From Octopus bimaculoides (Eukaryota): 64,000 bases of DNA. The stretch is from positions 194,670,912 to 194,734,911 of the forward strand of contig NC_068981.1 in assembly GCF_001194135.2 (NCBI RefSeq). Direction: 5' to 3'. A program made the translations under genes and the position numbers. This document shows positions 3,075-41,200 of this stretch, piece after piece. Each line of letters starts with the position of its first letter. Position 1 is the stretch's first letter. Under the pieces are notes generated by a model. It did not search any database. It was not told where the DNA came from and worked only from the letters and a program-made list of their open reading frames with translations.

Positions 3075-3280
3075 GTCGTCCTCGTCCTTGTCATCATTTG
3101 TCATCATCTAACATCTATTCTCAGTTCTGGCATGGAAGGATCCAATGTGTCTGAAGATCCATATAGATATTAGATGATACATTATATTATATATCACATA
3201 TATATATGATATATATATATATGTGATATATCATATCAAATTGTATTGTATTATATTTATTATGTTATACTCTGTTGTAG

Positions 3281-5543
3281 GACTGCAAGGATTTTCCTCT
3301 TGGGGACAACAAAGTCTAGCAAAAGATCCTTGCTGAAAACTGTGTTAAAGGATCAGTTTCAGGAGTCTGGTGCCAAAGGTGATGAAGGTGTTACACTGTG
3401 GCTATGGCATCCTTTCAAGAATCAACAAAACTGTAGGTCCTTTACAATGTTATTTTTGTTGTTGAATGTTGTTGTTGTTAAGCCCTAGTTCAGATCTGAA
3501 TGAGCAGACCTATGATCAGAAACAATCCAGCCATGACCATCTCATCATGTTATTCCAGACGTAGCATAACCAAGACTGTTTTATTGTTTTTTTTATATGT
3601 TTCAGCCCTCAAGGTTGTGGCCATGCTGGAGCACTGCCCGTAAAAATATTTTTTAATATGCTGGACTGCCGTGACCAAGATTCAAACCTGGGTTACCACG
3701 GCCTCAATGTGGGGTCCTCACCACTAAATGATCACAACCTTCATTTGGTTTTAATATGAGGGAAACTTGGCTGCTATTTCTGATGTATGCATGCATCTTT
3801 ATATATGTGTGTGTGCGTGTGTGTGTGTGTGTGCGTGTGTGTGTGTGCGTGTGCGTGTGTATCATCATCATCATTTAATGTCCTTTTTCCATGCTGGTAT
3901 GGGTTGGCTGATTTGACAAGAACAGACAAGCCAGAGGGCTCTGCCAGGTTCTATGTCTGTTTTGGCAGGGTTTTTACAGCTGGATGCCCTTCTTGATGCC
4001 AACCACTTAACAAGAGTTTACTGGGTGCTTACTTGTGAGTGGATTTGGAAGATGGAAACTGAAAGCAGCCTATCTTATATATGTATGTATTTGTGTGTCT
4101 GTGTTTGTCTCCCCCACCATCGCTTCATAGTCGATGTTGGTGTGTTTATGTCTCCCGTAACTTAGCCATTCAGCAAAAAGAGACCGACAGAATAAGTACT
4201 AGGCTTACAAAGAATAAGTCCTGGGATCGATTCGTTCGACTAAAGGCAGTGCTCCAGCAAGGCCACAGTCAAATGACTGAAACAAATAAAAGAGTAAAAG
4301 AATTTCTTTCAGAGCAGTGAGTTGGTGGAATCATGAGGGCATCATAAAAAATATCTTGGAACATTTGCTCCAGGTCTGAAAGTTATGAGATCAATTCTGA
4401 CTGAAGTCAAGAACCAGGGGGGATATAAATCATATCACCAACTGCATCCCCACCCAACTATAAATTCCAGGCCCTGTACCTATGTTAGAAACAGTTATTG
4501 GTTAATACTTTACATGGTTTTGTAACATTAGAGAGCAATATCTTTTCAGGTGATTTAGTGGCAGAATATATGACAGAAGATTTAAAAGACTCACAAATAG
4601 AAATCTGGGAACTTTCAGACAATCAGGTTGGTAGCTTTCGTTTCTTTTACACAAATATTTATGGAGTAAAGATTGTTTGCCAACATAACATGGCAGTCCT
4701 GGTTTAGGACGAATGTAATTTAGCCCCAGGAGACATCGTCTCCAGCTGGCTATAGGACACGATCTGTGTCCTTACATTTTTTGAACAAGGGAATCTAGCA
4801 CCCCCACTCAGCTCAAAACAATATCTGTGTATTACGATTTCAGGGTTATTTGCCTTCATCAGCACAGAATAATTGTTTGGCTAGAAGTGGCACTGCCAAA
4901 TTCCTGTTTGAAATATATAGTTTTCAACGGGAATTTGGCAGTGCCAAACATTTATTCTAGCCAAACATTTATTCTGTGCTGATGAAGAGAAATAACCCGG
5001 AAGTCGTGATACACAGATACTGTTTTGAGCTGAGTGGGGGTGCTATATTCCCTTGTTCGAAAATATAAGGACACAGATTGTGTTGTATAGCCAGCTGGAG
5101 ATGATGTCTCCTGGGGTTAAGCTACAGCAACATTCGTCCTAAACCAGGAGTGCCATGTTATGATGGCAAATAATCTTTACTACAAAGTACTGTTGCTGAA
5201 TATCTCTCGTTGTGAGATTTAAAAATAGTAATTTTCTAACGAATATTTATAGTCACTGACTTCTCTCCCCCACCTACTCTCTCTCTCTCTGTCTCTATTT
5301 CTCTACTTATCACTCTTTCTCCCTCTTCCCTCCCCCTCTCTTTATGCACCTCATCATTTATGCATACACACACATCTTCTCTGACTTTAGATCTCTGTTT
5401 CCCTCTCACTTCGCCTCTGTTTTTCTCAATACACATCTCTTGCTGAATCCATCCATCCATCAATACATCATTCAATACGCACACACATACAATCATATAT
5501 AAATATATGTAGATGTGTGTTCTCTCTCTCTCTCTCTCTCTCT

Positions 5544-5592
<49 letters not shown>

Positions 5593-6316
5593 CATACATA
5601 TATATATTATAGTGGGGTAGGCTAGTTTATGGGGTTACTGTGGGTTTCTCACTCATAAGGGATTTAGCTTTACGGCATATCATCAAACCCCAAACGCTGC
5701 TAGCCTGAGACTTCTTTAAAATCTCAGAGGTCCCAGGCCAGCAATGTTTGGGGGTCTGAAGATATATCATAAGGCTAAACCTCTTATGAGCGAGAAACTC
5801 AGGGCAACCCCATAAATCACTATAGTATTAACTGCTCCACATCTTAGAGTCTGCTTCTTCTCCATATTTATGTATTTCTACAAACGATCCTTTATATCTA
5901 TATATATGATAATAATATTAGGGAAAAAATTCCAAATTTACAGGGAAAAATTCAATTTAATTTATCAAAATTAAATTAAATTTCATAATATATAAATATA
6001 TAATTTAGAGAAAAAAACCACAATTATTTAATTCATCCATGAAAATCCACAATCATACATATATTTTACTANNNNNNNNNNNNNNNNNNNNNNNNNNNNN
6101 NNNNNNNNNNNNNNNNNNNNNNNNNNNNNNNNNNNNNNNNNNNNNNNNNNNNNNNNNNNNNNNNNNNNNNNNNNNNNNNNNNNNNNNNNNNNNNNNNNNN
6201 NNNNNNNNNNNNNNNNNNNNNNNNNNNNNNNNNNNNNNNNNNNNNNNNNNNNNNNNNNNNNNNNNNNNNNNNNNNNNNNNNNNNNNNNNNNNNNNNNNNN
6301 NNNNNNNNNNNNNNNN

Positions 6317-6369
<53 letters not shown>

Positions 6370-7699
6370 TATAATATATCTAAAGTTCTTTAATCACTGG
6401 TGTATTATTCTTTGCTGACCACCCCAACAGGTATTTCAGAAGATCCACCCCATCTATTACACATCAACTGCCCTCTATGTAATCACCTGTCATTCACCAA
6501 AGCCCAACTGTAAATCTGTGGTCGACTTTATCAATACAGTCCAATGTAAGGTAGGTAATGCTTTCATTGTACCTTAATTACACTTTATTTAGTTTCATTC
6601 TGCTCTCATTATATCTTAATTATTCTTTAACCCTTTAGCATTCAGATTAACCCTTTTGATACCAACCCGGCTGAAACTGGCTCTGGCTCTGTAGTAGAAA
6701 TGTCCTGTTTCCATAAGTTTTGAATTAAAATCTTCCACCAAACCTTAGTCACAATCTATGTTCCTAACACTAGCTTAATGATAACTAAGTCATTTTACTA
6801 AATTCTTTGTTATATTTAAAGTAAATGAAAGAAACACAGAGCATCTCAAAATAAATAAAGTAACGAAAGGGTTAAAAGTCTTCGTTAACTTTCCACATTT
6901 CAATGTCATGTAGTTAGAGTTTTTGCTCTCTGTATTTAAACCTATTGTTACCAACCCGGTCATTGCCAGAACCACCTGACTGGCACTTGTGCCGGTGGCA
7001 CATAAAAGCACCCACTACACTCTTGGAGTGGTTGGCATTAGGAAGGGCATCCAGCTGTAGAAACTTTGCCAGATCAGATTGAAGCCTTGTGCAGCTTACT
7101 GGCTTTCCAGACTTCAGTCAAACCATCCAACCCATGCCAGCATGGAAAACGGACGTTAAACGATGATGATGATAATTTCATGAAATAATTTGTTTTCAAA
7201 AAAATTTTGTTAATTTCAGAATCCCGGCAGCAGTATATTAATTGTAATGATTGTAAGTGATATAAATGGGGAGGTGAAAGGGACTCGAACCTGCGTCCCT
7301 GACCAATACTTCCAATTCCTCATGAACAGCATAATAGACAATGAGAAAAACCAACTGGACAGTCTGCAAGAGGAGATGGAACAAATTAGGTGAGACCTCT
7401 TCTACTTAGACACTGATCATTGGTCAGTTTAAGTAAGATAGCCACTGGTGGCCATCATTGGTCAGTTTTGGGTAAAATTTAGTGACTGGTCATTGTTGGT
7501 CCATTAATTAAAATAAATTATCTGTGTTGGTGTTCATAAAAAGCCCCCACAACATTCTAGAAAGTGGTTGGTGTTAAGAAAGGGCTTCCAACAGTAGAAA
7601 GCATGCCAAAACAGACAATTGGAGCCTGGTGCCGCTCTCTGGTTTGCCAACTTCTGTTGAACTGTACAATCCATGCCAGCATGGAAAATGGATGTTAAT

Positions 7700-7733
<34 letters not shown>

Positions 7734-10700
7734 AATGATATGGATGTTGGAATAAATCAAAATCCCAGATAGTCAAAGCAGGAAGTTCAATTGGTTATGA
7801 CTAATTTCATAAACTGATCAATCACATATATTAAAGACAGAACGCCTGGCATTCTATTTATTTCCTTCTCTGATCAAGTTCAGGATTGAAATCTTGAATA
7901 TAATCAGAGAAGGAAACAAGTGGAATACCAGACTTTCATATTAAGGGCCAGTTACCTATCTATGTTTGTTACCTACAATCATAGAAGGGACAGTTATCTA
8001 CTCATGTTTATTAAAGGGTCACTTACCTACCTATGATTGCTAAAGGATCAGTTTCCTATCTGTGCTTGTGAAAGAGTCAGTTACTTACCTGTGATTACAA
8101 ACATATGAGATAACAGTCCCTGCATTATTAACCCTTTTGTTACCAACCCAGCCGAAACCACCTCTGGCTCTGTAGTACAAATATCTTGTCTTCATAAATT
8201 TTGAATTAAAATCTTCCACCAAACCTTAGTCACAATTTATGTTCCTAACACTAGTTTCATGATAACTAAGTTATTTTACTAAATTCTTTGTTATATTTAA
8301 AATTAATTCAAAGAAACAGAGCATATCAACAGAAATATAGTAACAAAAGGGTTAAGGTGTTCCAAAGGACCAGTTAGTAAGCTACATTTGTTTACTCTTT
8401 CATATTTTATGAAATCCCTTTTAACTTTACCAATTTCATGTTCCTTAGGTCCCTTGATGCAAACGAAGAAGCCACAGAGAAGATTAAGTTGTTAACCCAA
8501 CTGCTACACACTCGGCCCAAGTTGCCGAAACAAGTCCATGTACTCAATTTTTCAACAAACCAGGTTTGTATAACTTTACTGTTTAGGCAAGGGTGTGGGT
8601 GTTTAACAAGTCTGCTTCTCTCATCCATAGTTTTGTGCTCAGCTCTGATGTAAAGTCAGATTAAGTAATGCCTTGTGAGTGATATTTGCACAGCACTCAA
8701 AAGTACCTTGGATCGTAGGGCGACATGCTGTGCTTGAGGAGACCTATTGAGTCAAGTACATCAAAACCAAAATCAAATGGAAATTGTTGTTGTGATTCCC
8801 GTGCCAGTGGCATGTAAAAAGCACCATCCAAACGTGGCTGATGCCGGCGCTGCCTTGATTGGCTTCTGTGCTGGTGGCAAGTAAAAAGCAGCCACTACAT
8901 TCTCGGAGTGGTTGGTGTTAGGGAGGGCATCCAGCTGTAGAAACATTGCCAGATCAGATTGGAGCCTGGTGTGGCTTCCTGGCTCACCAGGCCCATTCCA
9001 AGCCGTCCAACCCATGCCAGCATGGAAAGCGGACATTAAATGATGACGATGATGATGATAATGCATACATGTTTACAAGTATGTATGCATGCGTGTATGT
9101 ATGTATGTAATTATGTAAACATGCATGTGTGTATGTATGTAGGTAGGTATGTCTGCATCTATGTATGTGTCCGTGTATATGTGTTTGAGTGTGTGTGTGT
9201 GCATGTATAGACGACGAGATGCATAGGGAGAGTGAAAAGAGGGAGGGAAGAGGGACAAAGAGTGATAGGTAGAGAAATAGAGAGAGAGAGAGTAGGATGG
9301 GGGAGAGGGAAATAGGTGGCTGATAACGATGACGATGATGATAATGATAATCCTTTCTACTAGAGGCACAAGGCCTGAAATTTGTGGGGAGGGGCATGAG
9401 TCAATTACATTGACCCCAGTGTTCAACTGGTACTTAATTTATCGACCCTAAAAAGATAAACGGGAAAGTCGACCTTAGTGGAATTTGAACTCAGAACGTA
9501 GCAATGGGCGAAATACTGCTAACCATTTCGTCCAGCTTGCTAACGATTCTGCCAGTTCATCCCCTTAATGATGATAATGACGACGATGATGATGATTATG
9601 CTGATGATGATAAAGTTGATAGGGACGATGATGATGATGGTGATGAAAATAATACACTTCTTCCTCTTTTGAAGGATTAAACTTATATTTTACATTTACC
9701 ATAATAACATTCCAACCAATGATTCCTTCTCTTTCCTCTTCTCCCCCACCCTCCTCCGCATCTGTGCAGGGTTCTGACATCATACAGTCAGCTCTACTCC
9801 GTAACTGTATTGACCAAATGTGTGATGCCAAGTGGGAGCATCAAGAGGAGCTGGACATTATAAGAGACAAGATTTTTGAGTTGAAGGAATCAGGAACCGT
9901 TTTAGCAACATGGTCCTCTCTTCAAGAGTATTTCTTCACGAAGACACAAACTACACACCAAAAACTCTTTGAAAAACTGATGTCATTCCTCCACAAAATG
10001 GTAAGTCGTTTAGGTTTGGTTATTTTGTTGTGGAATAACTGTGAGATTATAGTTGTTGTAGTTGTTCTGATTAACAGCTGTGGAAAAAAGGTGAGAAAAT
10101 GGGAAGGCTGGCTGGAGAACAGGCAGGGCCCGTGGAGTTATTTGCAAAGCTGCCTATTTCAGTCAGTCTGGGATGAGCATTGGTAACCTACATGACCTGT
10201 CTTGACTCATGAACTGAAGATTCCCAGTCAGCTGTGAGTCATTGCAGCTTTTCCCTTCATGGACTCCAACGAGACATTGAAAGAGAGAACTTCTTGCCAT
10301 GTTCAGCATGCTTCATGTGCACTTGAGGACCACCTCAAAGCATTGGTCCCGTCTAGGGACTGTATGCACATATCTGGATTGAAAGGGTTGGCCTTGTCTG
10401 TTCTGATTCAGGTTACCGGAGCACTGGATAGAATGCTTCATGGTAATTGTGTGACTCTCTGTGCTCTGAGTTCAAATCCTGCCTAAGTCAAATTATTTTT
10501 CATTGTTGCAAGGTTGACAAAAAAATGACTGATCTAGGGTGGTAGATTGAGGGATTGTGAAAAGGTTGCATGGCACGTAAAAAGCACCATTCAAGCATGG
10601 TTGATGCCAGTACCGCCTGACTGGCCCTTGTGCCAGTGGCATGTAAAAAGCACCCACTACACTCTTGGAGTGGTTGGCGTTAGGAAGGGCATCCAGCTGT

Positions 10701-13700
10701 AGAAACTTTGCCAGATCAGATTGTTACTCTTCTTCCAACTTAGTCAAGGGTTCAAATCTTGCATGTACATTCTGTTTTTTGTCAAGGCACTACTTTTTTA
10801 CTCTTTTACTTGTTTCAGTCATTTGGCTGCGGCCATGCTGGAGCACTGCCTTTAGTCGAGCAAATCGACCCCAGGACTTATTCTTTGTAAGCCTAGTACT
10901 TATTCTATCAGTCTCTTTTGTTGAACCGCTAAGTTACGGGGACATAAACACACCAGTATCGGTTGTCAAGTGATAGTGGGGGGGGGGGACAAACATAAAC
11001 ACACAAACATATACACACACATACATACATATATACATATATACGACAGACTTCTTTCAGTTTCCGTCTACCAAATCCACTCACAAGGCTTTGGTCAGCC
11101 TGAAGCTATGGTTGAAGACACTTGCCTAAGGTGCCACGCAGTGGGACTGAACCCGGAACCATGTGGTTGGTAAGCAAGCTACTTACCACATAGCCACTCC
11201 ATGGTCAAATTGATCTAACAGGTTATGCTTAAACAGCTCTTAGTTAACAACTGCAAGGAAAACGTATATTCTCCTTGATGTTATTCATCTTCAGTGACGA
11301 GGCATGGCACAGTGGTTAGGGCATTCAGTCTATGGTCATAAGGTCATGAGTTCGATTCCCAGCAGTGCATTATGTCCTTGAGCAAGACACTTTATTTCAC
11401 ATTGCTCCAGTCCACTCAGCTGGCAAAAACGAGTATTACCTGTAATTCAAAGGGGCCAGCCTTGTTACATTCCATGTCATGCTGAATCTTCCTAAGAACT
11501 ACATTAAGGGTATGCCTGACTGTGGAGCGCTCAGCCACTTGCTCGTTAATTTCACAAGCCGGCTGTTCTGTTGATTGGATCAACTGGAACACTCGTCGTC
11601 ATAACCGACGAAGAGCCAGTTGATCTTTAAGTCCAGATGTTGAACAATTGTAATTTCTTAATTCTTTCTTCAGGGAGGTAGTCTTGACCTACAGAAATGT
11701 GGATGGAACCAAATCGACCTTGATAATCATTTCATCTGTGTGAATCCCATTGTATTCACAAAACTTCTATGTCGATTCCACATTGCAGAAGAAACCCAAG
11801 AATTTCGGTTAACATCCACTCACTTCTGGCCAGACAAACAAAATAAACCAAGTGTGGAGAGTTTGGTTCATGTCTTAGAAACAGTCCAAGTCCGTGGAAT
11901 TATTCCTGAAACGTTGTTCCCAGTTTTGTGGCAAGAGTTCCCGACGTTAGATGAAAGTCAGGTGAAGCTTCTACTTCAAGTGTTTATCAGCCTGGGTATG
12001 TTGCTTCCGCTTCATTCCAGTGTACATGGTTCATCTTTAACAACATTATCGCTACCCACATATCCAACACTTTCACCCAAGAAATATTATTATGCATCGG
12101 TCATTGATTGCTTCAATGACCTTCGACCTCAGCTCAACTGGACTCCAAAACCATACCCAGGAGATTTACAGGTAAGAAGACTACACACACATCATCATCA
12201 TCATCATCATTTAACATTCTTGTTCTCCGCTGGCAAGGGTTGGATGATTTGACAGGATCCGACAAACCAGAGAACACCACTGAGTTCCAATGTCTTCTTT
12301 AAAATGGTTTCTACAGCCAGGTGCAATTTGATGCAGTTCTGTGGCTTGTTGGATCTTGTTAAACAATCCAACCCATACCAACATGGAACAAGGATGTTAA
12401 ATGATGATGATGATGATATATAAGAAAATATATATAGATGTAAAAGAAAAAATATAAAGCAAAACCTAACTACTTTTAACATTCTCTTCTTTCTAAACCA
12501 AATCATGTTAAATTAATAAAACCTAGTCATTCCCAACATTTTTGATTATCTCCCTTATACTGGAAAAAATCCCTGATTACCTTCCCCTGCCGGGAACTCC
12601 ATATTTCACAACATAGCGAAGACATGACATGGTATAGGTAAAGAAATTTGAGAAACTCGTAAAGAAAATTACGAAACTGGTTATTTCTCCAAAAACAATG
12701 TTACTATATGCAAAATTTTCCAGTATTTTTCTAACATAACAATTTAAATATATTCTTTAACCATATAGCACAAGCCTTCTGTAATTTTTTCACTCTATTT
12801 TGTCTTTTAAACATCCAACCACGTGCTTTCACATACCAACTCTCTCACCTATTCAAATTAAAATACACACACACACACACACATAAATATAGTAAAGTTT
12901 CCATAAAACTTCTATTCCTGTATTGGTCTACCATGTTGACTTCCCAAACTCTGTACAAAAGGTGTGGTTAACTGACCTTGCTCCTCCAAATAGATTTTAT
13001 TCCTGTGTCTGTTGTATGACATATTGTCTCCTCTCCTCAGTCTGTTTATGGTACGGAGTTACATCTCCCTCAGGTCTTTATCCTGTGTTCTCATTTATTA
13101 AAAATTAATGATTTAGTCTAGAGGAAGGGGTTGTGATAAAGAGAGATGAATGGGGTTGATTTTCATCTTAAACAAACTGCAAAGAAAACAAGGACTGGAG
13201 GGGTACTTCACTTCGGTAAGAAAGGGCTGAGTGTAGGGAGTAGGGGAACATAATATGAAAGATGGGAGGAGAGATGAGTGAGGTGGGTGGGATTGGGTGG
13301 AGAAGGTACACAATCAACAAACTACAAAGAACAGAGGCCATTGTAGTAGCAGTAGAAAGACAAAGTGAGGAATCAGTGTAACTGTGGGTTTCAGAAGTGG
13401 ACTCCATGGCAATCATTCTTTTTTTGTTTTATTTGTTTCAGTCATTTGACTGCGGCCATGCTGGAGCACCGCATTCAGTCGAACAAATCGACCCTAGGAC
13501 ACTTATTCTTTGTAAGCCTAGTACTTATTCTATCAGTCTCTCTTTGTCGAACCGCTAAGTTACAGGGACGTAAACACACCAGCATCGGTTGTCAAGCGAT
13601 GTTGGGGGCACAAACACAGACATACAAACGCACATATATATATATATATATATGCATATATACGATGGGCTTCTTTCAGCCTCCATCTACCAAATCCACT

Positions 13701-16700
13701 CACAAGGCTTTCGTTGGCCCGAGGCTATAGTAGAAGACCCTAACCTTAACTTGCCCAAGGTACCATGCAGTGAGACTGAACCCATAACCATGTGATTGGT
13801 ATGCAAATTACTAACCACACAGCCACTCCTGTTTTATTTCTGTATCCGTTTAGCTTTCTAGCCACTTTCTCATGTTTCTATCTCTATTGACCAATGTCCT
13901 TCCAGTGGCCTTGTTCTTATATCTTACTGACCAGAAATTTACTATTGACCTTCAATGGATCCAATTTCCTTTCCAGATCAGCTGCTGGTTCCGTTTCATC
14001 TTGGGTGATCCCCCAGAGGGTCTGATGCAGCGACTGCTGTGTTGCTGTCACCAAGCCATACACAAACAGGCAACTTACCAACACTTATGGAAACATGGAG
14101 TGTTGATACGTGCTGGGGAAGTGATGCTTTGCATAGAATACACATCAGGAAACATCAAACGCTTCCATATAACTGGTCGCATCAATACAGACTTCCAAGG
14201 AAGCGAAGCAACGGCTATACAGATGACGTGGCTTAAAATGGCTCCCCTCATTCTGGCGGCCATTTCCATGCTCAGTTCTTTCCATGGTTTAATGTATAGT
14301 ACCTACCTGGTGCCATTAGGTAAATATTTCTATGAACCCATTGAGACGGCCACTGATTCCACTCACCAACATGTCTTCTCAACTGGAAGCTGTCTAAAAG
14401 CATGGACTCACAAAAAGCCTTTGATTATTGAAAGAGAAAGAATTCTAAAAGTCGATCATCTTTTTCCATTTGAAGGTAAGTTTTGGTTCATTCCAATCCT
14501 GTCCAAATGTTCTTTAACCCCAGGCTAACCTGGATCCAGCAGATCTATGATCAAAGACATTCCATTTCATTCTTGGACTGTCATGTTTTTTTATTTTTTA
14601 ATCTTTTACTTGTTTTAGTCATTAGACTGTGACCATGTTGGGGCACCATCTTGAAGAATTTCCATTTGAATGATTGAACTGCATTTTTTTTTAAAACCTG
14701 GTACTTATTCTGTCAGTTTTCTTTGCTGAACCACTAAGTCATTGGGATGTAAACACATCAAAATTTCCACTTCTTTCTTTTTTTTTTATTTTTATTTTTC
14801 TAAAATTTTCGTTGCGTTTTGCAACTTTTTCAATAGAAGACCAATGGAAGAAGCAGCACTGTTAGATCTCAGAATGTCAGATATTGTGGAAGAGATAAGA
14901 TCATACTGTATGGTAATAGATCTCTCCCACCCAAACTAGTCTGGGAAAAGGAAGTGAAGTTGACACTGGAGTTGACTTAATTGACTAACCATTTGAGACT
15001 AAATTTGTGATCTTGTATCTATGTCAGAAACAAATATAATTCTGGATTCCAGCAGGGGCATTCATGCATCTACTCTACAACAAAACACCTATATCTGTCC
15101 CCTCAATACCTTAAATCTCTCAACTTGCACAAAACCACAATCCCACAACACTACCCTCCACTCCCAGTTGAAGGGCTTTTGTCTTGCAAGATACTTGGTG
15201 ACCCTGTCAGTGCTGGGGCCGCATAAAAAGCACCCTGTACACTCTGTGAAGTGGTCAGCGTTAGGAAGGGCATCTGATCATAGAAACCAGCCCAAAACAG
15301 ACAGTGGAGCCAGGGACAGCTCTTGGCCTTGTCATCCACTGCCAAACCATCTAACCCATACCAACATGGAAATCGGATGTTTAATGATGATGATGATGAT
15401 GATGATGACTTCAATCCTGTTCAGGACAACTTTGCCTTTCCTCACAATGGATTTGATGAAGTATCAGTCAAGTACCAGAGCCCTTGGCATTAACATTTTC
15501 CCCCCAAACTGCAGGCTTTGTGGTGGTGCTGGTGGGGCAATGTAATTAACAATCACCTTCTCACTAATAATTACTGGTCTTACACCAGAATTTAAAGCAA
15601 TTATCATAATAGTTAATGCAATAATAAGAACATGGAAGACAAGATTAAAAAAGAGTTAAAAGTTGTAAATTGTTGTATTAATATAATTCCTCCTCTCCCT
15701 CCTCCTCCTCATCATCATCGTCATCATCACCACCACCACCACCACCACCACTACCACCACCATCATTATTTAACATCCATCTTTCAAGCTGGCATGGATT
15801 GGACGGTTTGGAAGGACTCAATGAGCCAGAGGATTGTACTGGGTGCCAATGTCTGCTTTGGCATGGTTTCTATGGCTGGATGCCCTTCCTAATGCCAACC
15901 ACTTTACAGAGTGTACTGGGTGCTTGTTATGGGGCACCAGCCCTTGTGATGTCATCGAATAACTCACAAAACAAAGAAAAAAGACCTTCAACTGGGTAGG
16001 GTTACAGTTTTGAGGAAGGTGGCTTTATGTCAGGAGTTGAGAGGATAAAGTATGATGGAGGGATAGACACATGAAGTCTTCTATACAGAAGATAGATGGC
16101 TACCCTGTATTATATAAGGGTGGGTGGGAACAACTTGAAAGAAGCCAATGATAGTGGTGACGAGGTGTCAAAATGTAATTCAACTCCAAAATACATATTA
16201 GTGTATTGTTAGTGGAAATATAGAAATATTTACCGATTTCTTGTGATTCTCAGATTGATGTAGTTCCAATTCAATATTGAACTTTGCTTTCTTTTTCTTT
16301 GTTGTTTCTAGTACAAAAATCTGTTGGTTCCATCTCTGTTATGATGGAATTCATCCTCTCCAAGAAGGAAGAAATCTGCTCCCAGAGTGAAGAAAGTCCA
16401 TTGATTGTTGATAACTACTCAGCAGCAAGATGTTCCACTCAGATGGCAGTTCCAAAGACCAAAAAGAAAGCGATGCTCCAAATAAAATGGAAATTAGATG
16501 AAGAAAATAAAATTGTCCAAAAAACGAACAACAACATGGCAGGTGAAGGTTTGTCTGTAAAAGACAATGGTAAGAATTCCTGTATAGGGTCTGATACTTC
16601 AAAGGGAACACTTCAGAACCTGAATGAGACTGAAACTGGGGTTTCGAATGAAAATGAAATTGATGGAAGAATAATGAATGGTCGAGTGATGAGTGAGGAG

Positions 16701-16979
16701 AATGAGAAGTCTATAACTGTGAGGATTGCTTCTAGTTTTGTGGCGAGCATAATGGTAATGGCTCTAGCACAGCACCTTGTGGAAGAATCTTCAGTGTCTG
16801 TGGGAAATATTGCTAAAATCACAGCTACAACTGCAACTGCAGTTCAGGCTGGTGACATTGATGCAGCCGTGAATGCAGTGTTTGATGTTGTGAATAAAGT
16901 TAACGACATGCTTGAGGTAAAACCTTCTAGCCCCAAAAATGAGGCCCCCCGCAAAAGTAAGTTTTGTATCTTAATGTAA
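3281..16979 (+). CDS. Roco-family (ROC-COR) protein, MFHAS1/MASL1-like; 5' part not identified or outside the window; multi-exon
   Basis: Phase-consistent GT-AG exons: 3281-3432, 4550-4626, 6431-6550, 7220-7389, 8449-8563, 9770-10000, 11674-12171, 13977-14475, 16312-16979. Peptides RIFLLGTTKSSKRSLL (P-loop position), IEIWELSDNQ, VFQKIHPIYYTSTALYVIT (cf. LRRK2 EFYSTHPHFMTQRALYLAV), a helical ROC insert ending KLLTQLLHTRPKLPKQVHV (cf. MFHAS1 HFQYLLNHRLQILSPVLPV), and COR-like PPEGLMQRLL...LWKHGVLI. Family call rests on recalled sequences; orthology not tested. Confidence 0.8.
4662..5240. mobile_element. Fold-back (palindromic) element with hammerhead cores in both arms; probably Penelope-derived
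   Basis: Arms about 250 bp, centre near 4916. CTGATGA..GAAA core on - at 4824-4868 and a degenerate core on + at 4974-5018. A single partial arm recurs at about 32915-33127. Confidence 0.75.
4824..4868 (-). ncRNA. Minimal type-I hammerhead ribozyme motif
   Basis: Minus strand: TCTGTG CTGATGA AGG-caaataac-CCT GAAA T-CGTA-A T A CACAGA. Stem I TCTGTG/CACAGA, AUA triplet. Activity untested. Confidence 0.6.
5608..5824. mobile_element. MITE-like element with about 60-70 bp imperfect inverted repeats
   Basis: TTATGGGGTTACTGTGGGTTTCTCACTCATAAGGGATTTAGC is mirrored by GCTAAACCTCTTATGAGCGAGAAACTCAGGGCAACCCCATAA. Confidence 0.5.
6651..6871. mobile_element. piggyBac-like MITE
   Basis: TTAA|CCCTTTTGATACC ... 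GTAACGAAAGGG|TTAA; the same family is at 8132-8351, 47375-47530 and 47551-47738. Confidence 0.75.
7942..8098. repeat. Degenerate minisatellite, about 29-bp unit x5
   Basis: Recurring AAAGGGTCAGTTACCTACCTGTGATT-like unit. Confidence 0.5.
8132..8351. mobile_element. piggyBac-like MITE (second copy)
   Basis: TTAA|CCCTTTTGTTACC ... GTAACAAAAGGG|TTAA; internal sequence matches 6651-6871. Confidence 0.75.
11297..11620 (+). mobile_element. tRNA-derived SINE with conserved central domain
   Basis: A box TGGCACAGTGGTT, B box GAGTTCGATTCC, then TCCTTGAGCAAGACACTTTATTTCAC. The 3' part recurs reversed at about 33905-34075. Confidence 0.65.
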
Positions 16980-17556
16980 AAAAACCCCCCAGAAAATAAA
17001 TGAACTCACAAACACATTTGTTTTTAATCTTTTCATCAGGGGAGAAGTTAGTGTCTATGACCTGTAACAGGGAACTCTAAGACTAGTGGAGGGGAGGGGA
17101 GGTGGATGGAATCCATAAACCATAGATCAAATACTAGCTGCAGATTAGACTCTACTTATGGCACCAAAAGTATTGTGGCAAAACGACAGGAGATATGGCT
17201 TAATTCTTATGATACCAAATGCATTTGGACATACGATAGTTTAACATAATAACAAAGAGAGATATATATATATATATATATATATCATTGCTATTACATT
17301 AAACTGTCGTATGTCCAAATTTGGGCAAATGTGTTTTTTGAATTTCTACTTTTGGTTGCGATAGCTGATTCTTTTGGTCAAACTATCGTATCGCCAGCTG
17401 CTTCAGATGCCAAGAAATCAAAAATTGTTGAAGTGTAGAACAGTTTTTGCTATGGAATGGTGAAACTATTTTTCGTTTTCTGAATAAGCAACGTTTTGAA
17501 CTTACGACACTTCTGCATAATAGCAATGATATATATATATCATCATCATCATCATC

Positions 17557-24534: not shown

Positions 24535-27500
24535 TACATAAATTTTCATAAACCCAAAGGCTGAAAAGTTACAATAATAACCATAATAATATATTATGAT
24601 AATATATATGCTCCGATTATGTCACTTTAATTGGAGTATCATCATAATCATCATCAATTAACGTCTGTTTTCCATGCTGGCATAGGCTGGACAGTTTGAC
24701 TGAGGTCTGTAGAGCCAGTGGCTGCATCAGGCTCCAGTGTGTGTATATATATATATATATATATTTATATGTGCGCAATCACATATATCTGTTTGACACA
24801 TGTATGTGTGTGTAAGTGTTTATAGAGATATGTGCGTGTGGGTGTGTGCATAAGTGTATATTGATATACACGGATATAAGTAAACAATGATAAGTATATA
24901 AACATACAGAGTCATATATACAGGGAAAACAGACAGATTTATAAAAATATATCGGGAGAGGATCACTTTTAATAATTACAAATAATATTATCAAAAGATT
25001 ATTGTTATCAGAATTACGAGGGTGAGTGAAAAAGTAATGCCATTTTGTTTAGGACAGGTATAATTACCAACACAGGAACATGTATCATACATCAAAATGA
25101 AGCTGGTCCTCTGTGGATCACATCCCTACTTCTCAACATGGTCACCGCTTCTCTCAATAGCAATATTCCACCTTCAAATGAGAGCATGTATCCCTGCTCC
25201 ATAGAATTCTGTTGATTGTTCTTTGAGCCACTTCTTCACTACCTCCACTCACCAGGTTTAGCGCCTTCAGACAATCATCTCTTCGGTGCCATGAAAGAGG
25301 GTTTGAGAGGCAAACATTATTCCAATAATGAGGAAGTGAAAACTGTTGTGAAGAAGTTGCTCAAAGAACAGTCAACAGAATTTTACGGGGCAGGGATACA
25401 TTGCTATTGAGAGAAACGGTGACTATGTTGAGAAGTAGGGATGTGATCCACAGAGGACCAGCTTCATTTTGACGTTTGATACATGTTCCTGTGTTGGTAA
25501 TTATACCTGTCCTAAACAAAATGGCATTACTTTTTGACTCACCCTCAGAGTAGGACCTGACATCTCGATTCAAAATTTAAAACTATCTGCATTAACTCTG
25601 GATATTGTTATCAATATTTCATGTAAACTTCTAAACAGCTGCTATAATCACTAGAGATCAAAAGAAAAATATACGAGCTGTAGAGGACACAGTAGAGGAA
25701 TGGCAATGGTGGTGGAAAGTAATGGAGGTGATGGTGGTGGTGGCGGTGTCATCATAATGGTGGTGCTGGGAGTTGAGATATTGGTGTGTTAAGTCGGCCA
25801 GTGTGGTTGGCACATTCATTTCCATCCCTCTTCTCATCCAGTCACTTTCGTTCTTCTTCAATACATGACTCAACCATTTCAACCTATTTCTCTTCACAAC
25901 GTCTGTTGCTGGAGAAAGAAAGATGATGACTTGCAGAGTATGCTGGGAAATAAATCTCCAGATCAATAAACCCAAGAAACAACAACTATCTCCTGTAACT
26001 GTCTTCAGTTTTTCCTCTTCCTGGCATAAACCCTAACTGAATTATACTGTGGCAGATTTTCTATGGTTGAATGCCCTTTCTGTCACCAAGCCTCACTTGT
26101 TTCCAACTGAGGTAATATTTACATTATTTACATTTGATGGATATTTGTCCTCATCTTGTTTGTTGTTAACACAACGTTTTGGCTGATATACCCTCCAGCC
26201 TTCATCAGGTGCCTTGGGGAAATCTCGAACCTGGGTTCTCATTCCTAAGGTATTTTTCGATGTTATTATTATCATTATTATTCAGGTCACTGCCTGGAAT
26301 CGAACTCGGAATCTTGGGGTTAGTAGCCCGCACTCTTAACCACTACGCCATATGCTCATGGGCATATGTTAATAATAACATCGAAAACTACCTTAGGAAT
26401 GAGAACTCAGGTTCGAAATTTCCCCAAGACACCTGATGAAGGCTGGAGGGTATAACAGCCGAAACGTTGTGTTAACAACAAACAAGATGAGGACAAATAT
26501 CTGTCAAATGTAAATAAAGTAAATAATGTACTTAATTCCTCATCTCCTAAATATAGAACTCTAAGGTAATATTTCCCCATGACCAGACAAGCTTTTGTGG
26601 GAAACTGGCAATGATAGTGGCACTGATTTACAAGGACTTAGGCTGCTAAAATTGTCTCAAGGGAAGAAATTCTCCTTAGGGACATCATCATCATCGTTTA
26701 ACGTCCGCTTTCCATGCTAGCAGGGCTGGACGATTTGACTGAGGACTGGTGAACCAGATGGCTGCACCAGGCCCCAGTCTGCTCTGGCAGAGTTTCTACA
26801 GCTGGATGCCCTTCCTAACGCCAACCACTCCGAGTGTGTAGTGGGTGCTTTTACGTGCCACCAGCATGAAGGCCAGTCAGGCGGTATTAGGAACGGCCAC
26901 GCTCAAAATGGTGTATTTTATGTGCCACCCGCACAAGAGCCAGTCCAGGGGCACTGGCAACGATCTCGCTCGAAAATCCTACGACGGCCAGTCAGGCGGT
27001 ACTAAGCTGCTTAGTATACCTCTAATTAATAAATAATTAATTCCAGATTGAGGAAGCTTTGTGGCCAATTAGAGCAGCAAATATTAGACCATTTGCTGGT
27101 CTAATATAAGAAAAAACAAGTTTTTAGTAACCAACCATGAATGATGACTCAGTATTTGGAGCTGATGATTCACAACAATGCAGAAATGCATGCATCTTGC
27201 AATCCAATATCATTCATAGCCCAATGGTGTGGTTTTTTCACAAATTTTGTGTATAAGGAGAATTCTTTTGTTTCTGGAAATAGTTTCTGCAGCCTATATC
27301 CTTCCATGTCCAAGTGTGCATGAACCTATTAAATATGATTATACACACCTATATTTTATTCAATACTTTTTAGTGTGCCTGTAACTTTTACACACACACA
27401 CATACACACACGTGATGGCTTCTTTTGCACATAACAGCACATGTACGGTTCAATGTTCTAATACAAGAACCAGAAATTTTTAGTGGCTGTGAAGAATGAC

Positions 27501-35300: not shown

Positions 35301-38242
35301 GGGACTTACTTCAATAATCCCTAAAAAATGAAAGGCAAAGATGGCCTTGGCTGGATTTGAATCCCTGAATGTGACAGACATTTCAAGAGAATTAACTTAA
35401 TATCACTAAGAAGTTTATCTGACGCTCTACCAATTCACCTCTAACCCTGTCGACCTTTGACTCGGGTCACAGCTGCATACAACAGACATTCTGGATACAT
35501 TCTATCACTCTCTCTTTTATTTGTAGCCATGTCTTTGTATATGAGACAAGGAGAGAGAGAGAGAGAGAGGGGGGAAGAATAAATAAACCGTTATAACAGA
35601 TGTACAGGGAACAACTGACAAGAACAAAGGTATATATGGGGGAGGGGTACCCGAAAGAAACTGGAATTTTTGCAATGTTATTTTATTCACTTAGTTTTAA
35701 ATGCTTACACTTTTATTGCCTTCATATTGAATTCTCCATTTGAAGCAATGCATCGGTCCAGGCGCGTTTTCCATTATTCGAAGCAGTCCTGGAATTCTTG
35801 CGAAATGATGCCTTTTAACGCCTCCATCGTTCCTTTCTTCACCTCTTCCACATCTGCAAATTCCATGGCACCAGCTTTCGCCACCAGGGATGACTTTCGA
35901 CAAAAGGTCCGGAAATACTTCCAACTGTTCTTTCAGTTCACGACACGCATTCAGTCGAGACTGTTTTTGATGTCCAGTGAGGAAGCGAGGCACAAATTTT
36001 GCTGCAACTCTTTTCATTCGCAATTCCTCGCTCAAAATTCGTTGGCAGCAGCTCCAGGACACAACAGTCATATCAACAAGTTCTTCAATTGTTCGGTGAC
36101 GGCACTCCAAGATCAGTTCATGAATTTCCATGATGTTTTCATTCGTTCCGGAGGTCGACGGTCATCTTGAACAAGGTTGGTCTTTAAACGACAAGTGACC
36201 ATTCCTAAAGCATGGAAACCACTCGTAAACTTGTGTTCTCCAGCAAGAAACAAAATTTCATGGAAGCCATTCCAGAAATCAATGAACAGGGGAGAAGCAT
36301 TGCAAAACAAAGACACACCAAGTGAAGCATGACTCCACGTGCAACCACCAGTCGGCAGACTGATGCCTGAGGGTTGCATCAAGTGGCTTCTAGTAGTGAG
36401 AGCCTGAACTACAATGGGTTTGTCCCACAGTAAACGTTTCTGGTTAAGAAAACGTTCTGGCTAAGGTGGCGAGCTGGCACAAACGTTAGCGTGCCGGGCG
36501 AAATGCTTAGTGGTATTTTGTCTACCGTTACGTTCTGAGTTCAAATTCTGCCGAGGTCGACTTTGCCTTTCATCCTTTCGAGGTCAACTAAATAAGTACC
36601 AGTTATGCACTGGGTTCAATGTAATTTACTTAATCCTTTTGTCTGTCCTTGTTTGTCCCCTCTATGTTTAGCCCCCTGTGGGCAATAAAGAAATAATAAT
36701 TATTATTATGATAAACACACACACACACATACAAGGGAGTTCCTTGCCATTTAATGAGTAACTCCAATAGTATGCTTTCGCCACACTGGGTAATACCAGG
36801 AAATATGACACACATTTAATAATTATAATTTAAATTTCATCACATTTCTTGCTGTTTATACAAAATGACGAAATGAATATTAAGTTTCAAAACCAAGTAA
36901 TAGTAAAGAAAAAAGAATCTCATTTGAATAACTCTTCCCACTATTCCTCTAGCATTTACCTCCTCCCCTTCCTGCCTTCTCTGTCTCTTTGATTCTGTAT
37001 CTCACACTATGTGTGTGCGTGTGTGCGCATGCATTGCATTCCAATATTCATTGCCTGCCACCAAGCCTAGTATGAACACACATCCACCACTTCTTATGTT
37101 AATTCTCTCTGTATCTCTCTTTTAAATCTCTCTCTTTTTCTCTATACATTGTAAAGCATGACCAGAAGAATAAAGTTACCAACTAACCAACATATATATA
37201 TATGAACATATATATATGTGTATATATATATATATATTATTTTGCTTAAAAGAGTTCCAACACTGTCTGTTTTTTATGTTTTATTTATATTCCTGCAGAA
37301 CTAATGTGGGGTATAGAATATGGAATATACAATATATAATATGATATACAATATACAATATAAAATAAAATAAAATAAAAATGGATGGCACCATGAAAGA
37401 AAGTATTGAATGTAGATGAAATATTGAGTGTTCAATATAAAGGATCAAATATATAAATATATAAATATAAATATATATATATATAAAGGCAACTCGAGTT
37501 TCAGGGCTATTTCCCTTCGTCATGGCCGGTATGACAGACTTTAACAGACAGTCTGTTAAAGTCTGTCATACCGGCCATGACNNNNNNNNNNNNNNNNNNN
37601 NNNNNNNNNNNNNNNNNNNNNNNNNNNNNNNNNNNNNNNNNNNNNNNNNNNNNNNNNNNNNNNNNNNNNNNNNNNNNNNNNNNNNNNNNNNNNNNNNNNN
37701 NNNNNNNNNNNNNNNNNNNNNNNNNNNNNNNNNNNNNNNNNNNNNNNNNNNNNNNNNNNNNNNNNNNNNNNNNNNNNNNNNNNNNNNNNNNNNNNNNNNN
37801 NNNNNNNNNNNNNNNNNNNNNNNNNNNNNNNNNNNNNNNNNNNNNNNNNNNNNNNNNNNNNNNNNNNNNNNNNNNNNNNNNNNNNNNNNNNNNNNNNNNN
37901 NNNNNNNNNNNNNNGGGGACCCTGTCAAAGGCTTTCTCCATGTCAACGAAAGCCAGGTACAGAGGTTTATCCTTGGCTAGGTATTTCTCTTGCAACTGTC
38001 TCACTAGAAATAAGGCATCAGTAGTGCTTTTACCTGGCACGAACCCAAACTGCATCTCATCTAAATTGATTCGCTCGTTTAACGTCCGCTTTCCATGCTA
38101 GCATGGGTTGGATGATTTGACTGAGGACTGGTGAAACCGGATGGCAATACCAGGCTCCAATCTAATTTGGCAGAGTTTCTACAGCTGGATGCCCTTCCTA
38201 ACACCAACCACTCAGCTCATTCATACATACCTTCATACATGC

Positions 38243-38293
<51 letters not shown>

Positions 38294-41200
38294 TGTAAGT
38301 ATGTGCGTATGTATGTGTGCATATAGTAATGAAATTAACTTACCTGTTGTAAGGTGTCCAGGATAATCTGCCGGTTCTTTTTCAGCGTCATCAGTTTGTT
38401 CTCATACAGTTGTCGTCTGTCGGGTACGACTGCCATCAGATTGAACCAGATGTCATGGTAAGGTTCCCTTTGAAGACAAAGAGGGAGACATTCGTTAAGC
38501 ATGACACGTAGTTTAATTGGGAAGTGGAACACTTGAGGAGTATTCTGCCAGCCTCAGACCAACAGGATACAAGGGTGTCACATCATTTCGTGACACTGTA
38601 ACTGTGATAAATGTGGCGAGCTGGCAGAAATGCTAGGATGCCAGGCAAAATGCCTAGTGGTATTTTGTCTGTCTTTACGTTCTGAGTTCAAATTCCGCCA
38701 AGGTCGACTTTGCCTTTCATCCTTTTGAGGGTCGATAAATTAGGTACCAGTTGCATACTGGGGCTGATCTAATCGACTGCCCCCCCCTCCCCCAAAATTC
38801 TCCCCGGTGGCACGTAAAAAGCACCATCCCAACATGGCCGATATCAGTACCACCTGACAGACTCCTGTGCCGGTGGCACATAAAAAGCACCCACTACACT
38901 CTTGGAGTGGTTGGCATTAGGAAGGGCATCCAGCTGCAAAAACACTGCCAGATCAGATTGGAGCCTGGTGCAGCTGCTGGCTCTCGAGACCTCAGTCAAA
39001 CTGTCCAACCCATACCAGCATGGAAAACAGACGTCAAAAGATGATGATGATGGTGGTTTCTGTTATGGAACTACAGGCATTTTCGGGGCCACCAATCAGT
39101 TCTGTTGATTCTGAAAAAATATTTTAATCGCCTCAGAATTGATTTAAGGAAAAGTAGGCCAAGATGGGATTTGAACTCAAAAATTAGCAATGTATGATGC
39201 TTGATAGGAACAATGGTAGTTAAGAAAAGAGTTTGAAAGAGAAATCTTACCCTCCGGTACCCGTACCAAGTCTCTCAGAGATGACCCGACGAAATTTTTC
39301 AGTCCAGTCTTCATTTTCTTGCCATGGCCCTGAATATGGAGAACAGTAAGTCAAGGAGAGGTGGTCATTGAAGGGGAGATAACTCATATGAATATACACA
39401 TTGATGTCAAAAGACACTATTACCACCAGAAATTCTCCGAGAAAAACACTAGGGAATGTTACTATTACTTTAAGCCCAAAACACAATCATATACGCGGTT
39501 AACCAAAATTTTAATTCTTTCTTCGGCTAGCCTATCATATAGTGTGCTTTTCTCAGAGAATTTATGGTGGTAATAGTGTCTTTTGACATCTATTTTTAAA
39601 TGCGTGGTGAGGCTCAAGCCAAGCCCTTGTTATAATTATGTATATAATTATAAAATATTTATAAAATTTACCTGTGAGGTTTTATTTCCCCGTTGACCTC
39701 TTGGTAAAAATCATTAATGACTTTTACCCTTTATTATCATTAATGACTTTTACCCTTTATTATCATACACATTGATGTCTAGATAGATATGCTTTGTTGT
39801 ATATAAATACTTTTTTTTAAAAATCTATTTGATTATTTATTTCCAATATATTCTATATTCTCCATCAAATATAAAAATATAAGGTCATCATCATCATTTA
39901 ACATCCGCTTTCCATGCTAGCATGGGTTGGACGATTTGATTGAGGACTGGTGAACCAGATGGCTGCACCAGGCTCCAATCTGATCTGGCGGAGTTTCTAC
40001 AGCTGGATGCCCTTCCTAACGCTAACCATTCCGAGAGTGTAGTAGGTGCTTTTACGTGCCATCGGCATGAAGGCCAGTCAGGTGGTACTGGCAACGGCCA
40101 TGCTCAAAATGGTGGTTTTTACGTGCCACCTGCATATAATATATACCAGAGTAAACACATAAATGTGACAAAAAGTGGGAAAAAATAGTACTTGAATACC
40201 AGAGGTAAAGTAATACGTTTTAGTGTTAAAGCTGCAAAAATATCACAAAAATATCGCCAAAAAATCAGAGTTTCACATTCCTGTTTGTTGGACAGATGTG
40301 ATAAAGAACTTGATCACAACTATTTACATTAGACAGATATTTGTCCTCATCTTGTTTGTTGTTAACACAATGTTTCGGCTGATATACCCTCCAGCCTTCT
40401 TCAGGTGTCTTGGGGAAATTTCGAACCTGGGTTCTCATTCCTAAGGTATTTTTTGATGTTATTGAACTTGAAGCTATGTGGTTGGGAAGCTAACTTTATG
40501 ATCACACACAAAGACAAAGACACACACACACAGATACAAAGACACACACACACAGACAAAGACACACACATACTCACAGACAACACAATACCGAATATAC
40601 AGTTGTAAAAGATTTCAAGAAGAATACATACCATGGTCAATGGGGTATGGCTTGAGACCATCCAATTCAAAGAGGTGGCCATTTATAGGTACATAGCTGA
40701 CAAAATGGAATGCTTCCATGGTTCGGACAGTTGATATACCTTGTTGTTTCTCTGGGAGGTGACGAGGTTCTGGTCTAAGAAATGATAGAGATACAAATGT
40801 GTGACATGGTTATGACACAGGGAACAAAGGAAATGTAACATAGATGTGACAAGGGAGAACACAGGAAATGTAACACAGATGTGAAGTGTTACAAAGTGTA
40901 TCAGGCATGAAAGGAATTGTCACAAGGTATATATGTCTCTGATCTTTTATTCTTTGCTTGTTTCAGTCATTAGACTGTGGCCATGCTGGGGCACCACCTT
41001 GAAGAAGTTCAGTTGAATGATTCAACCTTGGTACTTACCTTTTTTTAAGTCTGGTCCTTATTCCGTCAATCTCTTTTGCTAAGCTGCTAAGTCACAGGGA
41101 CATAAACACACCAACACCGGCTGTCAAGCAGTGATGGGGGGGACAAACACAGACACACACACATATAGATATCATCATCATCGTTTAATGTCCACTTTCC

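Follow-up and report, generated by a model that had tools for sequence, protein, structure and literature searches.

A divergent Roc-COR gene of Octopus bimaculoides ends in a CaaX box conserved across a small, unnamed metazoan ROCO subfamily

The DNA analysed here, referred to as the window, is a stretch of 64,000 nucleotides (nt) from Octopus bimaculoides (contig NC_068981.1, positions 194,670,912 to 194,734,911 of the forward strand). It is repeat-rich animal DNA with 2.6% N, in which a Roc-COR (Roco) gene lies on the + strand at 3281-16979 in at least nine exons. The last codons of this gene spell a CaaX box (a cysteine, two aliphatic residues and a variable final residue), from which an initial annotation, made from the sequence alone, had read a prenylated Roco together with an 83-nt intron able to switch the anchor off. 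Our analysis bears out the CaaX box, which is conserved and selected, and with it the inference of an anchor, but not the switch, since neither the acceptor nor the alternative tail is conserved: the gene most probably encodes a divergent ROCO with an ancestral CaaX anchor, its mRNA ending at the AATAAA at 16995 and the 83-nt intron probably going unused.

Searching with the COR exons returned one protein, XP_036364909.1 ("uncharacterized protein LOC118766001 [Octopus vulgaris]", 678 aa), in which Pfam Roc was present. When aligned to the window by tblastn, this protein fell on eight exons (3279-16979, 88-98% identity), with the exception of one 61% match that extended from the second exon into the following intron. 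All exon junctions were canonical GT-AG, the last one leading from AAG/GTAAGT at 14475 to an acceptor at 16311/16312. Because XP_036364909.1 reads ...VDHLLPFE/VQKPVGSISV... and terminates ...APRKSKFCILM, the splicing of the COR-B exon to the last exon and the CaaX end are already in public annotation. The initial annotation had required exon 16312-16979 to be joined to the COR exons; in the NCBI model COR-B is spliced to it, and all relatives show the same order. That the last exon is part of another gene was also considered, and was rejected on this join, on phase compatibility and on the identical domain order in all relatives.

For comparison with the window, two further octopod loci were used, a 1.4-kb Logan contig (L001) and a locus on an O. 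vulgaris chromosome (L002). A ninth exon, 11674-12171 (498 nt, the core of COR-A), is absent from XP_036364909.1; it is in phase on both sides, has good splice sites, carries the family signature ...RPQLNWTPKPxxGDLQ and is intact in both O. bimaculoides and O. vulgaris (L002 43694-44194), with 93% amino-acid identity and no stops. Its absence from the NCBI model is either an annotation omission or a skipped-exon isoform without most of COR-A. Joining the nine exons gave an open frame of 843 aa, and the frame is open across all nine in both species. The Met is contributed by an upstream exon, and the first codon of exon 3281-3432 is completed by an upstream exon that lies outside the window or was not identified within it. 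An exact look-up of the last-exon open reading frame (ORF) of the window gave no match. The exons and the grounds for each are as follows.

3281-3432, + strand: Roc exon, G1 region (RTARIFLLGTTKSSKRS...); tblastn of XP_036364909.1, AG/GT junctions, Pfam Roc at 31.5 bits
4550-4626, + strand: Roc exon, switch II region (IEIWELSDNQ); tblastn, junctions, rebuilt frame
6431-6550, + strand: Roc exon; tblastn, junctions, rebuilt frame
7220-7389, + strand: Roc exon; tblastn, junctions, rebuilt frame
8449-8563, + strand: Roc/linker exon; tblastn, junctions, rebuilt frame
9770-10000, + strand: start of COR-A exon; tblastn, junctions, rebuilt frame
11674-12171, + strand: COR-A exon, phase fitting both neighbours; match to family consensus, intact in O. 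vulgaris
13977-14475, + strand: COR-B exon with donor AAG/GTAAGT; tblastn, junctions, sub-threshold Pfam COR-B, COR fold match
16312-16979, + strand: terminal coding exon with disordered linker, helical module, CaaX and stop; sequence, tblastn, acceptor at 16311/16312

Other models of the gene differ in extent. The sole O. bimaculoides database entry is UniProt A0A0L8HN20 (A0A0L8HN20_OCTBM, 89 aa), which matches the window variants of exons 2-3 and joins them, not to exon 4, but to a repeat-derived poly-Asp ORF at 7578-7769 of the + strand (HGKWMLIDDDDDD...); this model is either incomplete or wrongly spliced. In O. vulgaris the gene call extends over 40.6 kb (L002 10001-50602), and since Roc exon 1 sits 7.4 kb into it, the start codon is on a far-upstream exon. 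It was also noticed that the intron between exons 4 and 5 measures ~17 kb in O. vulgaris versus 1.1 kb in O. bimaculoides, a large gap in size between close species.

Pfam Roc (PF08477) scored 31.5 bits in the rebuilt octopus protein and 39-54 bits in its relatives (cut-off 27 bits); by sequence, Pfam COR-B scored 18-24 bits, below its threshold (cut-off 27). The best PDB match of a family profile built from 15 members was the Roc domain of LRRK2 (E = 6e-18), the Roc part alone being matched by sequence. An AlphaFold2 (AF2) model of the rebuilt protein reached a predicted template modelling score (pTM) of 0.70, residues 1-647 mostly having a predicted local distance difference test score (pLDDT) of 70-90. 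The top Foldseek matches of this model were LRRK2, LRRK1 and the Chlorobium and Methanosarcina RocCOR structures (E 6.5e-16 to 6e-8), and COR was covered in the alignments to LRRK2, LRRK1 and C. tepidum RocCOR (3dpu, 6hlu), with E 1e-11 to 6.5e-16 over ~630-690 aligned columns. By both defining domains, the octopus protein is a genuine Roc-COR (ROCO) protein without a kinase. As in the known ROCO proteins (LRRK2, LRRK1, MFHAS1, DAPK1 and the Roco of Chlorobium tepidum and Methanosarcina barkeri), Roc is followed directly by COR-A and COR-B; unlike the named ROCOs, it has no kinase, death domain or other output domain, and it possesses a C-terminal module that is its subfamily's own (KKK-IKWKLD, Ala-rich helices, CaaX). 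No Pfam family matched this module or the tail exon.

The nucleotide-binding motifs depart from the family pattern. In the octopus protein G1 (the P-loop) is GTTKSSKRS and G3 (switch II) is WELSDN (window 3281-3432 and 4550-4626, + strand), whereas most relatives have canonical GxxxxGK[ST] and WDxxGR; Patella is also degenerate (GDCEEKKSR, WNLKYK). These degenerate motifs lower the claim of an active GTPase and leave that of homology untouched. Their occurrence in both octopus and Patella suggests repeated evolution of a pseudo-GTPase Roc within the subfamily.

To place the protein among its relatives, an exhaustive HMMER search with the octopus query was run over 1.84 billion representatives (E <= 0.001), and 21 representatives only were returned, with no vertebrate, insect or nematode protein among them. 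Automatic names are "MFHAS1-like" for the Acanthaster member and "roco4" or "LRRK2-like" for others, the rest being "uncharacterized"; on sequence comparison, the octopus protein is a subfamily member not demonstrably orthologous to any named ROCO (MFHAS1, LRRK, DAPK1). The C-terminus is Cxxx in all 21 proteins whose C-terminal module is intact, and [KR]-S-[KR]-x usually stands just before it; the relatives mostly have V, I, L or T at a1 and a2 and L, M, A or F at X, as listed here.

Haliotis: CVIL, CTIL
Tubulanus (nemertean): CNIM
Batillaria: CVLL
Patella: CRLL
Acanthaster (starfish): CTIM
Babylonia: CVIA
Scallops: CTIL, CVLL
Elysia: CSVF
Saccoglossus and Glandiceps (hemichordates): CSLL, CQLL
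Biomphalaria: CTLL
Antedon (crinoid): CEIL
Lytechinus (sea urchin): CIIL

The members without a terminal Cxxx are 1) truncated models that also lack the whole tail module, 2) one unrelated Roco (E = 2e-4) and 3) one ENA call, which reads 7 residues beyond CTIL (CTILWWACEWK) and whose sister sequence stops at CTIL. In the tail alignment (A2) the CaaX Cys is one of 2 invariant columns, and the order COR-B, linker, helical module, CaaX is common to all relatives; some of them (Tubulanus, Owenia, Lytechinus) have N-terminal leucine-rich repeats as well. These alignments suggest that the anchor was present in the ancestor of a small unnamed ROCO subfamily, with members in molluscs, annelids, nemerteans, echinoderms and hemichordates, and has been kept invariantly since. 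The box is real and, a point absent from the initial annotation, it is a family-wide feature and no peculiarity of the octopus. The named human ROCOs are not known to end in CaaX. Word-indexed searches, run with the last exon and also with a profile of the tail, gave one genomic Logan contig and missed even the NCBI model, so that no estimate of the family's rarity can be drawn from them. Although databases already contain the proteins, the subfamily, its C-terminal module and its CaaX box seem to be undescribed, and no literature linking Roco, MFHAS1 or Roc-COR proteins with CaaX, prenylation or farnesylation was found. A separate observation among ENA contigs (P0034/P0022) was a 183-aa predicted protein made up of the polybasic stretch, the helical module and KSKTCTIL only, whose cluster mate has the overrun; it is either a stand-alone tail module or a gene call of the last exon only.

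At the 3' end of the octopus gene, the ORF 16284-16979 ends ...EAPRKSKFCILM / ...NEAPRKSKFCILM. Its terminal codons are CGC AAA AGT AAG TTT TGT ATC TTA ATG TAA, placing CaaX at 16965-16976 and the stop at 16977-16979. The Cys (TGT, 16965-16967) stands at -4 from the C-terminus and is followed by I-L-M, an aliphatic pair and an accepted X. The features of this end that the initial annotation had pointed to, ...APRKSKFCILM and its stop, GTAAGT at 16957-16962, AATAAA at 16995-17000, the CAG ending at 17039 and a second stop at 17078-17080, were all read directly. Elements of the tail and of the sequence beyond it are the following.

16455-16499, + strand: polybasic KTKKK...IKWKLD motif, kept across phyla (tail alignment A2)
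16719-16919, + strand: Ala-rich helical module with three predicted helices (dN/dS 0-0.02, cross-phylum alignment, AF2 helices at residues 750-821 at low confidence)
16950-16964, + strand: basic/Ser pre-CaaX motif R-K-S-K-F, family consensus [KR]-S-[KR]-x (codons, alignment)
16957-16962, + strand: donor-like hexamer GTAAGT from codons AGT-AAG-T(TT), most likely unused (sequence, motif counts)
16965-16979, + strand: CaaX box C-I-L-M and stop TAA (Cys invariant in A2; 3 synonymous and 0 non-synonymous changes in the last 10 codons)
16995-17000, + strand: AATAAA poly(A) signal, 15 nt past the stop (sequence; kept in three octopods)
17018-17039, + strand: T-rich tract ending in CAG, a putative U-rich downstream element that had been annotated as an acceptor (sequence; CAG is CGG in O. 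vulgaris)

Conservation of CILM in other coleoids had been proposed as a check, and the same KSKFCILM was found in O. vulgaris and L001; indeed PRKSKFCILM is encoded at both loci. Over the last ten codons the three octopods differ at CGC/CGT, at TTA/CTA and in the stop, TAA/TAG, that is, by 3 synonymous and 0 non-synonymous changes, whereas the linker just upstream varies (KPSSPKNEA, RPSSPDNEA, KSSSPNDEG), so that a linker variable in sequence across species adjoins a fixed CaaX motif. The ratio of non-synonymous to synonymous substitution rates (dN/dS) among the three was 0-0.02 for the helical module, against 0.2-0.4 for the N-terminal portion of the last exon. As judged from these alignments, purifying selection acts on the CaaX box, and its conservation within the subfamily is deep. 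The last 21 residues (823-843) had a pLDDT <50 and no secondary structure in the AF2 model, and are thus predicted to form an accessible flexible segment, which is a requirement for a substrate of prenyltransferases. Further upstream, the polybasic run and IKWKLD (16455-16499) follow a family consensus KKKxxxIKWxLD, in which the Trp is at least 90% conserved, and lie ~70-100 residues before the helical module in all phyla; this KKK-IKWKLD motif could be a second membrane-binding or a protein-binding motif. The consensus of the Ala-rich module is RxASxFVAxILAxAVA ... SAAQxxAAxxTAxAAxAxQxGDxDGAAxAV. The first helix of this module is hydrophobic enough for membrane embedding. A transmembrane reading of the hydrophobic helix VRIASSFVASIMVMALAQHLV was set aside by topology reasoning only, because a single span would put the CaaX box on the side opposite to the cytosolic prenyltransferases.

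Because the CaaX box is selected and deeply conserved, a prenylated, membrane-anchored Roco can be inferred on good grounds. Farnesyltransferase (FTase) accepts CaaX generally, geranylgeranyltransferase I (GGTase-I) accepts CaaL/I/M, and CIIM, CLIM and CVIM have been prenylated experimentally (PMC11152559). CILM was not found as a tested prenylation sequence, either in PMC11152559 or among the top hits of a literature search on CILM. Based on the CaaX rules of the two enzymes, the octopus CILM should be farnesylated and most of its relatives geranylgeranylated. The protein would then consist of a GTPase-like Roc, COR-A, COR-B, ~100 disordered residues with the polybasic IKWKLD, the Ala-rich helical module and a flexible 20-residue tail, RKSKF-CILM. 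The lipid would be attached to Cys 840 of the 843-aa rebuilt protein (farnesylation, X being Met), followed by proteolysis of -ILM and methylation. The Roc-COR body would be tethered to the membrane by this lipid and by R/K at -8, -7 and -5 in the manner of K-Ras4B, possibly aided by the KTKKK-IKWKLD motif and the Ala-rich helices. The closest likeness is to K-Ras4B (...KSKTKCVIM), K-Ras4A (CIIM), Rheb and Rnd3, which share a flexible tail, Lys, Arg and Ser upstream, a terminal Cys-aliphatic-aliphatic-Met and a Ras-superfamily G domain. Unlike in these small GTPases, the octopus tail sits on an 843-aa multidomain protein, ~190 residues past COR and not right after the G domain, and in contrast to K-Ras-type Met ends most relatives of the octopus protein end in Leu, pointing to geranylgeranyl.

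On the + strand of the window AATAAA occurs about once per 930 nt, giving a chance of ~4% of meeting one within 40 nt of a stop. The AATAAA at 16995 and the following ~29 nt are nearly invariant in the three octopods despite indels just upstream, and the hexamer makes up a textbook poly(A) site together with the CA dinucleotides behind it and the T-rich tract. The mRNA 3' end would most likely be formed ~15-30 nt after AATAAA, leaving a 3' untranslated region (UTR) of ~35-45 nt. Two distal poly(A) hexamers occur at 17298 and 17632. In O. vulgaris, the coding end of a convergent gene similar to BAP1 lies ~2.8 kb beyond the Roco stop, which restricts the space available to a long Roco 3' UTR. 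In the window, exons of this BAP1-like ubiquitin C-terminal hydrolase were identified on the - strand at 40630-40713, 44223-44285 and 50591-50629 (Pfam Peptidase_C12, 1.2e-26), convergent with the Roco gene. Elsewhere in the window, two ORF fragments, 36066-36134 (-) and 25237-25320 (+), were considered as mariner-type transposase remnants; with no Pfam match at E <= 0.01, this assignment was left unconfirmed.

The candidate 83-nt intron overlaps both the CaaX codons and the poly(A) site. Its donor, AAAA/GTAAGT, has the GT at 16957-16958, and a T-rich tract, tttgtttttaatcttttcat, precedes the CAG at 17037-17039; joining 16956 to 17040 (removal of 16957-17039) would yield ...APRKREKLVSMTCNREL and the stop at 17078-17080. 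In our reading the GTAAGT is the octopod spelling of a conserved Ser-Lys and the CAG falls inside the downstream element of the poly(A) site, this element explaining the supposed polypyrimidine tract at least as well as an acceptor would. The poly(A) site would thus be used and the intron not.

Several points weigh against this reading. The octopods compared are close (dS 0.2-0.5), and conservation of so short a motif weighs little either way. The three helices of the helical module are modelled at low confidence (pLDDT ~50-55). With its degenerate G1 and G3, the octopus protein may not cycle GTP and is a possible pseudo-GTPase. Moreover, judged by its motifs the 83-nt intron is physically plausible, having a donor perfect from +1 to +6, 11 of 14 pyrimidines and a CAG; a CTCAC branch-like site lies ~31 nt upstream of its AG, and L001, the most distant of the octopods, retains the donor, the tract and the CAG alike.

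The first of the rival explanations, an improbable one, is a composite terminal exon: cleavage at the AATAAA within the 83-nt intron would give the CaaX isoform, and splicing from 16957 to 17039 a CaaX-less protein ending ...PRKREKLVSMTCNREL, polyadenylated at the distal hexamers (17298 and 17632). Such a switch would tune membrane-anchored versus soluble Roco, and the motifs it needs are all there, each of good quality. Precedents exist for isoform pairs distinguished by a CaaX box, as in lamin A versus lamin C, prenylated versus brain Cdc42, and K-Ras4A versus K-Ras4B. A 5' splice site that precedes a poly(A) signal follows the logic of lamin A/C, Cdc42, K-Ras4A/4B, secreted and membrane IgM, and calcitonin/CGRP; those systems, however, have conserved alternative exons and documented transcripts, whereas the octopus acceptor and tail are not conserved and are known here from genomic sequence. 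L001 retains the CAG, but O. vulgaris has CGG in its place, and the next AG there is a poor GAG two bases on that changes the frame. The spliced tails of the three octopods would read REKLVSMTCNREL, REKVVPVICNRELQDWW...KY (in full REKVVPVICNRELQDWWRREEVDGILKPEIRLKY) and RELSVYDL, each followed by a stop; they have 13, 34 and 8 residues in different frames, the differences in the shared stretch are all non-synonymous, and the stop moves. The alternative tail put forward by the initial annotation is therefore conserved neither in sequence nor in length nor in frame. Conservation of the frame is not strictly needed for a switch, because any acceptor in any frame deletes the CaaX box, with a stop within 6-65 codons.

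Conservation of the donor had also been suggested as a check, and although it is kept in the three octopods it is forced there by the codons AGT-AAG and the T of TTT, which spell the conserved Ser-Lys-Phe. No GTRAG was found in the terminal codons of six non-octopod genes for which genomic DNA was inspected (L003-L008), Patella having only a weak GTAAAA, which leaves no family mechanism. That GTAAGT has been kept at two synonymous sites in three close octopods is unremarkable. Within the window, 13 of the 35 GTAAGT on both strands (~37%) are followed at 60-150 nt by an acceptor-like site, defined as a YAG preceded by 9 or more pyrimidines in 14 nt; since an equally good acceptor is so often met by chance, the donor/acceptor pair is uninformative. 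In addition, the gene's other introns are 0.7-1.9 kb long, and the NCBI protein cluster has one isoform only, which is unspliced here. The GTAAGT is most likely an octopod-only by-product of the Ser-Lys codons, and the 83-nt intron is unlikely as a switch; that octopods turned these codons into a working 5' splice site, with competition between the 83-nt splice and the poly(A) site deciding on the anchor, appears improbable to us. For scanning of genomes it follows that splicing is only weakly indicated by a perfect GTAAGT in the last codons if the hexamer spells conserved residues beside a poly(A) site.

Two further explanations are, in our estimate, slightly less probable still. The GTAAGT could be a binding site for the U1 small nuclear ribonucleoprotein (snRNP) that damps the adjacent poly(A) site, resulting in lower expression or use of the distal sites with the protein unchanged. 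Damping of poly(A) sites by U1 is established, as in the papillomavirus late 3' UTR and in U1 telescripting, and by geometry alone the hexamer would suit, since it matches perfectly from +1 to +6, lies 38 nt before the AATAAA and is kept in three octopods. However, it is fully explained by the Ser-Lys-Phe codons, two synonymous sites fairly often survive unchanged over such divergence, and it is absent from the non-octopod relatives, which makes this role very unlikely. Equally unlikely is a decaying or non-functional octopus Roco whose CaaX box is a relic no longer modified or needed: the G1 and G3 motifs (GTTKSSKRS and WELSDN versus GxxxxGK[ST] and WDxxGR), the NCBI model that skips the COR-A exon and the 89-aa O. 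bimaculoides entry speak for it, but in two species the frame stays open from the first to the ninth exon, the linker and the helical module have dN/dS values of 0.2-0.4 and 0-0.02, the last ten codons show 0 non-synonymous changes, and pseudo-GTPase Roc domains can still serve as scaffolds.

The favoured explanation, a divergent ROCO with an ancestral anchor, marks out a metazoan ROCO subfamily, as yet unnamed, by a new conserved C-terminal module; within this subfamily the G domain of octopus and limpet looks like a pseudo-GTPase. LRRK2-type ROCOs act at membranes and are thought to be recruited via partners such as Rab GTPases. A ROCO lineage that has had its own CaaX box since before the protostome-deuterostome split would be a natural experiment on the behaviour of a Roc-COR body under permanent tethering and without a kinase.

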